From positions 620,001 through 684,000 of the forward strand of contig CDRNST010000226.1 of assembly GCA_977016875.1 (NCBI GenBank): DNA of 64,000 nt. Direction: 5' to 3'. This DNA is from Pavona decussata. Lineage: Eukaryota. Both the position numbers and the translations under genes were made by a program. This document shows, in pieces, positions 60,001-62,845 of the stretch. Positions within the stretch are counted from its first letter, which is position 1, and every line of letters begins with the position of its first letter. The notes beneath the pieces were generated by a model that saw only the letters and a program-made list of their open reading frames with translations, was not told the DNA's origin and ran no database searches.

Positions 60001-60710
60001 AGAGAGACATTCTTGAGTGTTTTCTCAAGTGTAGCATGAAGTGTGGCTTTTAAAACCACTTGGGCAAAAATTTAAGGTTAAACAATTAGAATTCCATTGC
60101 CAGTAATCTTTCGCTTCGAGACTAAGCGAGGAAAAAAGCATCAATTACTAATGAACACAGAAAATGACAGCCAAGCAACGTAGACTGGTGACCGTCATAT
60201 TTTGGTAATGAGCCATGCTTGTACTCCAAGCCTGTTTCGTTTGCGGCAACTTAATTGTTTGGGAGTTAAGGTCATACTAATTTAGCAGTTATTCTAATAT
60301 TTAAAATTAAAGGGATTAAACCTGGTAGCAGTTCAGTGCCTATGGCCGGAAGAGAAAAAGCGGACAGGGACTAAATTAAACCAATTAAGGCACGTTTCTG
60401 TGCTTACCACAATAGTTCCACTTTTAAAGATCCTGACCGTCCAAAACTTAATCGAGAAGCGGATATTTAATATTGGTCGCCAATCACTAGGAAGCTACAG
60501 TTTAGTGTATACCACACAGCTTGCTTAAATTCTATTTAGGAACGTGAGCGTTTGTTGACATGCGGTGACTGATAAAATATTATTGCACGCAAAGCCGCTA
60601 ATCCTCAAAGAAAAACACGGTGTTTGTATTTATAGACTACACACGATTTTTTCGGCCTAACCACTAATGCGGTTAGATAATTAAGTTCTGTTCAGAAAGC
60701 CGCAAACCCA

Positions 60711-61125
60711 GAGGGACGGCTACTATTAGAGTTATCTTCATAGAGTTATAGCGTGGAGTTAGAGTTGCAAAATCCTGAATTCAAGATTTTGTACTGCCAA
60801 AATCCTGAATTCAAGATTTTGGACGTACAAAATCCTGAATTCAAGATTTTGTACTGCCAAAATCCTGAATTCAAGATTTTGGACGTACAAAATCCTGAAT
60901 TCAAGATTTTGTACTGCCAAAATCCTGAATTCAAGATTTTGTACTGCCAAAATCCTGAATTCAAGATTTTGTACTGCCAAAATCCTGAATTCAAGATTTT
61001 GTACTGCCAAAATCCTGAATTCAAGATTTTGGCCGTCCAAAATCTTGAATTCAGGATTTTGGCAGTCGTTAACTCTAACTCTAAGTCATAACTCTACTGA
61101 AATAACTCTATTGCTAGTCGACCTC
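60711..61125. mobile_element. Foldback element with ~55-bp imperfect TIRs enclosing a palindromic tandem array
   Basis: Left GAGGGACGGCTACTATTAGAGTTAT..TAGAGTTAT..GAGTTAGAGTT; right AACTCTAACTC..ATAACTCTA..ATAACTCTATTGCTAGTCGACCTC. Confidence 0.7.
60768..61061. repeat. Ten copies of the 24-bp quasi-palindrome CAAAATCCTGAATTCAAGATTTTG at a 30-bp period; last copy inverted
   Basis: Units start at 60768, 60798 ... 61038; 6-bp linkers TACTGC, GACGTA, GCCGTC. Confidence 0.97.
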
Positions 61126-62845
61126 CAAACGAAGGTTACAATGACTTTTCAACAGTTTTTGTTTTTTTCGCCAGAGTTTGTTTTGATGTGACGGCCGGGT
61201 ATTTTGCCTAATGGTGGGCCGCTCATCGCAGGAAATTTTGAAAAGAACCTCTAAAGGTGGGCTTGGTCTGGATTAATTTTCACTACACGAGGGTATAAAT
61301 TCGTTTGGTAAGAGCTATCTTACTTCCGGCTTAATAGCACTGGGACAGCACTAACGGTGGTCATTAGCATTCCAAAGCATGAATTTTAACCGCTGAAGGA
61401 CAACTCTAGCCTGCGTATACTAGCCGCCTATCGTCTCTCCTTGCGTGCGAATGCCCCTAGCGGATTGTACAGTCCCTGGAAGGAGCTTGGGCACCGATCG
61501 GCAGGAAGCCCTTCTAAGTCAAGATGTATCCTATGAATTTTCCGGATAACAATAGCTATTGCTGGACTAACAATACTGGCTATTATCAAGAAAAAGGACT
61601 TAGGATACATCCCTAATAAAGAATGGCTTTCCGAATTTGGCCAGCTGGTGTTGGTAGTGCGTTTATAACCATGCAACCCAGCTAATTTTTTAACACTTTT
61701 GAAGCAGATATTTGTAGTACGCAGGTACAAACTAGCCAATGAATATCTCTAAAAGAAAAAGAGGAAAGATTTCTGCACTGTCCCATACGATAATTATGTA
61801 TACATTTTGCGATTCAAACTCTATCATGATTTTACGCTTGTCATCTTTAAAAGAGGGTTAGTATGAATCTGTTGTATGTATAACACATATATGGGTCGTT
61901 GCGGAAATCTTTCCGAAAACAACAAGTATATCTCCTTACTTAAAAACGTAAGGAAATATACTTCGGAATAGTTTAGATGACAGTCGATGAAATGTCCGTG
62001 AGAAAACTCGCAACTCAGACTGTAACATTTCAGCACCAGTGAGTACGAAACCGGGCGTGACAGGATCTCATGACCTGGGCGTGATTAAGGGCGGACAAAT
62101 TGAATGCTCGCCTCTCGGTAAAAATTCCCCCTAAGGGCAAACACAAAAACTTTTATTAACGATGCATCTTGCTTGAAATTCATTCATGATATTACCTGAG
62201 AAAAGAACCTTGTCATTTATTTTGTTTTAATAAATTTTGAAAACTGTTGTTCCGAAAAACAAACAAACAAACAAAACAAAACAAACAGGATGCCTGCCGG
62301 CAAACGAATATTTCCTGTTTTTGGTGGAGGAATCTTCTACGGATCACAACATTTCTGCACGTCCCATACATGAACAAGCAAATATCATGCACATGCCACA
62401 GAACAATTACTCTACTTGTTCATATACGAATATGAGTAGACGTAAAAAAATTTCTAGTTATGGAAAACTTGCAGTACCCTCTGTTTAATTAAAACTGTGC
62501 AAGGAAGAAAAGAAGAAAATTTTTAAGCGTGCTACATCACTGACAATAAACTGAGGATCTTTTGTTGAATACAACTCCAAAACTGGTATTCGTAGTTTCT
62601 TTACCAGGCTAGAGTGCAAATGTAAGGGTAGTTTGGTAAATGTAGATTGTCCATTTCTCTTAACAAATCGGATTACGATGTTGCTTAGAAGTGTAATAGT
62701 TAAAAGATCGATATTACAGGACACGAAAACTCCAAACAATTTAGATTTTCAGTCAAACGGACAACGTTGGAATTTCTTAACAATTACCAAGTACCCTTGA
62801 ACGAATTTGAAAAAAACAGTGCTGTTCTTTGAATTCTACAAGAGT

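Follow-up and report, generated by a model that had tools for sequence, protein, structure and literature searches.

The 414 bp at positions 60712-61125 of the window (the whole stretch of 64,000 nucleotides from Pavona decussata that was analysed) are one copy of a multi-copy family of transposable elements. Our preferred reading, to which we give a probability of about 85 %, is that this copy is a non-autonomous foldback (FB-like) transposon of the cut-and-paste type, presumably mobilised in trans, most likely by a Mutator-like (MULE) and less likely by a Merlin transposase, and that it represents an arm-deleted derivative. The element is a real, well-delimited and recently active non-autonomous foldback transposon of a known class, and the palindromic nature of its subrepeat is the one unusual trait.

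The element starts with a left terminal domain of 56 bp (60712-60767, plus strand), whose sequence is AGGGACGGCTAC... in the window copy as against GGGGACGGCTAC... in the consensus of the family, and which contains subterminal motifs of the AGAGTTA type. The left arm (60768-61031, plus strand) consists of nine identical forward units of 24 bp and eight linkers of 6 bp. It is followed by the linker GCCGTC (61032-61037), which belongs to the right-arm set as the reverse complement of GACGGC and is the putative deletion joint between the arms, and by a single reversed unit on the minus strand (61038-61061) that corresponds to the terminus-proximal (last) unit of the right arm. The right terminal domain of 64 bp (61062-61125, plus strand) runs from the invariant GCAGTC linker through AACTCT motifs to the end ...GCTAGTCGACCTC, and the computed listing of inverted repeats pairs the two terminal domains with each other. 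The copies of the target-site duplication, CAAACCCAG at 60703-60711 and CAAACGAAG at 61126-61134, match at seven of nine positions. We placed the left one using the family boundaries and the empty site of a related species, which skips 60703-61125; the right one is the same 9-mer as in that empty site, where 60702 is joined to 61126.

An earlier note on this DNA had started the element at 60711 and described its ends as GAG..CTC. Both details have to be corrected, as the actual start is 60712, the G at 60711 is part of the target-site duplication, and the consensus ends of the family are GGGG...CCTC. The first base of the window copy is A where the family has G. This change and two more in the left duplication fall within five bases of the left junction (60708-60712), and outside these changes the element is near-consensus. 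The cluster may be a footprint of repair, or chance. The mutated first base and the mutated duplication suggest that the window copy may no longer be moving.

Regarding the array, a pattern search with the 24-mer CAAAATCCTGAATTCAAGATTTTG returned ten matches at 60768+30k, i.e. with an exact 30-bp spacing; nine match exactly on the plus strand, the tenth (61038-61061) does so on the minus strand, and 100 shuffles gave no match. TRF reported a period of 30 with 9.8 copies at 60768-61061. The sequence, TRF and the 24-mer search all agree with the previous description, in which a 24-bp quasi-palindrome is repeated ten times with a period of exactly 30 bp, the first nine units being forward and the last one reversed. 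The linker order given there also held on reading the sequence (TACTGC, GACGTA, TACTGC, GACGTA, TACTGC four times, GCCGTC, and GCAGTC after the last unit), and the GACGGC motif noticed in the left terminus lies at 60715-60720. The array is enclosed, as proposed, by terminal inverted repeats with AGAGTT motifs: the arms at 60714-60766 and 61071-61123 are 53 nt long, 75 % complementary and rich in AGAGTT/AACTCT. The suspected tendency to form hairpins is pronounced, as the 414 nt folded as single-stranded DNA reach -134 kcal/mol vs -35 +/- 4 for shuffles (z = -23.9). The count of 9+1 units is given as assembled, and the available short-read contigs do not bridge the array.

The search of the genome (602 Mb in 1180 contigs) yielded more than 40 loci, and the family comprises about 40 copies. 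Pattern searches recovered 38 left termini (up to 3 mismatches in 40) and 37 right termini (up to 3 mismatches in 41), and 24 of 40 scored right-terminus matches are 100 % identical over 66 bp. The two termini, GGGGACGGC... and ...GTCGACCTC, are constant across the copies, and the copy alignment sets the family ends at GGGGACGGCTAC... and ...GCTAGTCGACCTC. Perfect 9-bp target-site duplications flank 22 of the 27 complete copies; among the other five, one has 8 bp and four, including the window copy, have a 9-mer bearing one or two changes. The logo of the 22 perfect duplication sites displays no target-site consensus. The copies hold between 0 and 27 units and measure 93-932 bp, and one copy reaches 2658 bp with a foreign element nested in it. 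No ORFs of note were seen in the family copies that were read. In descriptive terms these are MITEs, being short and non-coding, with TIRs and duplications, and present in about 40 copies, many of them near-identical. They are also of foldback type (FB-like), having inverted arms of tandem subrepeats, variable unit numbers, duplications at different loci and an empty site. The 27 complete copies with constant termini support the earlier idea of a foldback-type transposon with TIRs around a palindrome array. The target-site duplication and the variation among copies had been left to be established: the duplication is 9 bp long, and the copies differ in unit number, arm ratio and linker order.

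Several individual copies deserve a comment. A second complete copy (L053, C226:590800-591320) is located on the upstream side of the same contig, beyond the window and about 89 kb away from the window copy, in the opposite orientation; it is 521 bp long, with 6:6 units and a perfect duplication CTCTGATCA, and together the two form an inverted pair that could be a substrate for ectopic recombination. The smallest copy, of 93 bp (L051:554-646, C79:1828553-1828645), consists of the two terminal domains only, without any palindrome unit, and has an 8/9 duplication. It may be either a complete deletion of the array or an ancestral MITE-like form whose symmetry centre gave rise to the amplified palindromic unit. 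Copies L002, L017 and L022 are inserted within about 20 bp of one another in copies of one host repeat (...AAGATCTTGTCAGCTTTCATAGAGG...), and L017 and L022 share the identical target 9-mer CTTTCATAG in opposite orientation. Their flanking sequences suggest a local insertion hotspot.

Full copies follow a single plan, in which the left terminal domain (56 bp) is followed by forward units, one switch point (often a degenerate half-unit), reversed units, GCAGTC and the right terminal domain. No reversed unit was found ahead of a forward unit among 482 units of 27 copies. The distance between units is 30 bp in 409 of 452 intervals, and the left:right arm ratios range from 16:9 to 4:13, with 9:1 in addition. 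The left-arm linkers are mostly TACTGC (81) and GACGTA (53), which often alternate and so create a 60-bp higher-order repeat. Inward from the right terminus, next to which GCAGTC is invariant, the right-arm linkers are GACGGC (65), TACTGC (63), GACTGC (29), GAAGGGAGGC (23), GACGTC (23) and GAAGGC (18), and the right arm has two unit variants of its own. All linker types are connected by single substitutions. As the arms differ in their linkers and unit variants, they appear to evolve separately by tandem duplication. L012 and L022, which are located at different sites, have almost identical linker orders. Arrays therefore seem to travel with transposition and to change afterwards by a unit or two.

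Since no reversed unit ever precedes a forward one, we consider the tenth unit of the window copy to be the outermost unit of a right arm whose remainder was deleted, and not a local inversion. Other heavily reduced copies exist, with 3:1 units in 234 bp and with no unit in 93 bp. When compared in the same direction, forward and reversed units are identical at 22 of 24 positions and differ at two, so that slippage between the arms or unequal exchange could delete the centre. The ending composed of GCCGTC, the exact reversed unit, GCAGTC and the right terminus is identical in the window copy and L008, and in 3 of the 27 copies GCCGTC is the linker at which the two arms meet. At the other end, the first four linkers (TACTGC, GACGTA, TACTGC, GACGTA) are common to the window copy, L002 and L007, and the later run of TACTGC in the window copy appears to be a local 30-bp expansion. 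The recent expansion suspected previously is borne out by the nine identical units, which point to a recent local event.

From these observations we propose the following mechanism. The element is built from two imperfectly inverted terminal domains of about 60 bp with AGAGTTA motifs, which flank two opposed arms of tandem 30-bp repeats (24-bp palindrome plus 6-bp linker), and has no coding capacity. A transposase supplied in trans would make a staggered target cut of 9 bp, and the arms would grow and shrink by unequal exchange or replication slippage. The palindromic units make the arms direct as well as inverted repeats of each other, and slippage or recombination between them could then delete the centre. 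The window copy would be such a derivative, with nine left-arm units fused to the last right-arm unit. Its insertion postdates the split from the sister species.

The empty site was found in organism B, a related (sister) species in which the flanks are about 93 % identical. In a 2337-nt contig of organism B, position 60702 is followed immediately by 61126, the shorter side covering 42 nt. The contig thus skips 423 nt, i.e. the 414 bp of the element and one 9-mer. This joint confirms the element boundaries independently of the family alignment. In organism A, flank contigs of three samples enter the element from both sides without a mismatch, and the window copy is present in three sampled individuals. 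The family itself occurs in organism B at other sites. From the empty site it follows that the window copy was inserted after the split of A and B.

The dominant subfamily in this genome, with its identical termini and perfect duplications, appears to be very young. Variant termini GGGGACAGC...GTCAACCTC accompanied by decayed duplications were found in copies on metagenome contigs and in a few copies here (C79, C98, C182), and they differ from the dominant termini by CpG to CpA changes. This pattern is expected of older, methylated copies, which the variant-terminus copies probably are. Parts of the window stretch were also recovered from runs labelled "coral metagenome", and the exact 24-bp unit is present in 79 coral-type metagenome contigs. 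The unit is likewise exact in the older variant-terminus copies and in sister arrays with other linkers, which hints that the palindrome may be under constraint. This would agree with a function in transposase binding, which has been demonstrated for tandem repeats in the TIRs of Galileo (cited in PMC4079207). The conserved palindromes and the AGAGTTA motifs are probably transposase-binding sites, and it is plausible that the units serve as binding sites of a dimeric protein. We also considered a further reading, in which the palindrome, exact across diverged subfamilies, would be the site of a dimeric transposase or host factor, the arms would be interchangeable and the mobilising enzyme might belong to an unrecognised lineage. 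The lineage comes into question because no MULE or Merlin gene was found to carry the family termini. We regard this combination as rather unlikely; if it were true, the palindromic arms would be interchangeable as direct and inverted repeats, and the family could resize or lose an arm and keep its function.

The superfamily was assigned from duplication length and architecture only, because no autonomous partner was found. A Mutator-like affiliation has about an even chance, Merlin is doubtful, and so is any other superfamily. The genome contains at least 71 matches to the MULE domain (PF10551), at least 36 to the Merlin domain DDE_Tnp_IS1595 (PF12762) and 3 to FLYWCH, none of the latter beside a MULE match. 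Genome-wide, none of these matches lies less than 15 kb from the left-terminus 20-mer (up to 3 mismatches), and the nearest PF12762 matches, on C450 and C82, are separated from left-terminus-like sites by 17 and 21 kb. The duplication length of the family agrees with that of Mutator-like, Foldback and Phantom elements (8-10 bp, typically 9). For FB-like elements in general 8-10 bp, typically 9, are described, and most foldback elements have been placed in Mutator (PMC4079207). Tm1 of root-knot nematodes combines FB-like TIRs of variable and unequal tandem repeats with 9-bp duplications and a Phantom/Mutator transposase (PMC3169594).

Mobilisation of the same non-autonomous foldback element by a Merlin (IS1595-like) instead of a Mutator-like transposase is thus a possibility we hold with clear reservation. 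Merlin elements generate 8- or 9-bp duplications and have TIRs of 24-462 bp with a terminal 5'-GG (PMC8101967); the left end of the family is GGGG, and Merlin domains are well represented among the matches listed above. Against this, the right end in reverse complement is GAGG and not GG, the literature ties FB-like elements whose TIRs consist of tandem repeats and whose duplications are 9 bp long to Mutator/Phantom (PMC3169594, PMC4079207), and no Merlin match is located near a family terminus.

The searches for an autonomous partner through variant termini, inter-arm DNA (in the genome and the metagenome contigs) and domain co-location yielded none. Solo or variant left termini on C359, C82, C272, C35 and C123 proved to be either isolated 63-bp fragments or portions of a larger segmental repeat, without ORFs. 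A truncated copy with the variant end CGGGACAGC is found in L054, L055 and L056 (C35:1233500-1243400, C35:1291100-1301000 and C123:16100-26000), surrounded by more than 9 kb of repeated or segmentally duplicated DNA that occurs at least three times at 92-99 % identity. Copy L031 on C486 was considered for the 1.7 kb between its arms and rejected, as the extra DNA is an unrelated nested TIR element. It measures 1685 bp, has its own TIRs (GTGTGGTTCCAGAAAATATCC...) and sits inside the right arm (about L031:1813-3500, C486:2321300-2323000). The metagenome copies L065 (1158-4457) and L066 have 3.3 kb between the arms and were discarded too. Their only ORF (275 aa) gives a weak match to RVT_1 (E = 1e-5) and is a reverse-transcriptase fragment, so the insert is a nested retroelement and not a transposase.

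L032-L034 were considered as possible long TIRs belonging to an autonomous copy and proved to be another composite repeat, with one truncated foldback arm. This repeat (L033:1618-5001, L034:1734-4881 and L032:1761-2898 on the minus strand) is at least 3.4 kb long and starts with CACTATTGG. It has about 400 bp of AAACCTGTGAA subterminal repeats (CACTA-like), followed by a right-terminus-like stretch and one arm of 24-bp units with other linkers (GATGGACGGC and similar), broken off mid-unit. No ORF of at least 100 aa is present in it, and it resembles a chimera into which one half of a sister foldback element was taken up. In L033 it is inserted in a 40-bp satellite (L033:1-1618, 40 copies, 91 % matches). 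The 20-mer AGGGACGGCTATTATT(C/T)GAG, with the AGGGACGGCTATTATTCGAG motif, occurs at about 25 places in the genome (e.g. C15:312216, C293:96741 and C126:31242); it is 3 bases off the left end of the family and may mark the end of a sister family or of an autonomous one. In L089, which is a metagenome contig, the open frame at 702-1691 leads out of a foldback copy and into an exon encoding C-5 cytosine DNA methylase (PF00145, E = 8.5e-20), so that the element there adjoins or lies within a DNA methyltransferase gene.

Two further explanations have to be weighed against the arm-deleted foldback transposon. The first, taken from the earlier note, is a transposon related to Sola whose half-linkers were reshuffled, and whose tenth unit was turned round, by template switching or inversion driven by hairpins. 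The extreme hairpin propensity of the array agrees with such a process, and the window copy happens to read GAG...CTC if 60711 is counted. The family ends are GGGG...CCTC, however, and the duplications, perfect in 22 of 27 copies, are 9 bp long. The duplication of Sola elements is reportedly 4 bp. The 9-bp length therefore excludes Sola, and the proposed affinity is dropped. Inversion or template switching inside the array does not fit either, as forward units are always followed by reversed units with a single switch, and 0 of 482 units are reversed inside a forward arm. The lack of mixed orientations speaks against inversion or template switching being frequent. The parsing of linkers into half-sites is arithmetically correct, but their recombination is not needed, because all four linker types of the window copy are standard, arm-specific and connected by single substitutions. 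TACTGC and GACGTA are the two left-arm types, GCCGTC read on the other strand is GACGGC, the linker seen most often in right arms, and GCAGTC is invariant next to the right terminus. Overall this explanation is extremely improbable.

The 9+1 arrangement might also result from assembly collapse of a longer, more symmetric copy, in which case the element would be real and the unit count or arm ratio wrong. The short-read contigs that fail to bridge the array leave room for it, and the arms are more balanced in most copies. We nevertheless find a collapse very unlikely, as the window copy obeys the family grammar at both ends, the strongly asymmetric and tiny copies mentioned above exist elsewhere, and copies of 27 units are resolved in the same assembly. 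The deletion of most of the right arm remains our preferred explanation.

The finding leaves current understanding standing and adds a cleanly delimited, recently active foldback family to a genome that is probably that of a reef coral. Our literature search retrieved no description of foldback elements for corals and only two passing mentions for cnidarians. As its site is empty in the sister species and the copies are nearly identical, the element is a possible insertion-polymorphism marker. The palindromic subrepeats offer a natural system in which expansion, contraction and deletion of foldback arms can be studied, and pairs of inverted copies on a single contig, like that on C226, could serve as substrates for inversions, as shown for Galileo and FB in flies.

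Among known systems, Merlin resembles the family in its 8-9 bp duplications, terminal GG and the possibility of long TIRs (PMC8101967). It differs in that no Merlin transposase is linked to the family termini and in that a foldback architecture is atypical of Merlin. Galileo elements have duplications of 7 bp. They belong to the P superfamily and have tandem repeats with extra THAP-binding sites in long TIRs (PMC3688188, also cited in PMC4079207). They set a precedent in two respects, in that tandem repeats inside TIRs act as additional transposase-binding sites and in that the arms are highly dynamic in structure. They differ in encoding a P-like transposase and in having repeats of over 100 bp. 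Tm1 is similar in several respects: its TIRs are composite, with a terminal motif and a short tandem motif of variable number, the arms are unequal, non-coding members like MITEs exist, the 9-bp duplications lack a target consensus, and the outermost bases are imperfectly inverted (PMC3169594). Unlike our family, for which none was found, Tm1 has an identified copy with a Phantom/MULE transposase, and its repeat is 14 bp long and non-palindromic. Drosophila Foldback (FB), sea-urchin TU and Tetris of D. virilis share with our family two long inverted arms of short tandem repeats that make up nearly the whole element, repeat numbers that vary and are often unequal between arms and copies, mostly non-coding copies and duplications of 8-10 bp, typically 9 (PMC4079207). 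In contrast to these three, the family elements are small (93-932 bp), the linker sets differ between the arms, the host is neither an insect nor an echinoderm, and the subrepeat is a 24-bp palindrome, which makes the arms direct as well as inverted repeats of each other.
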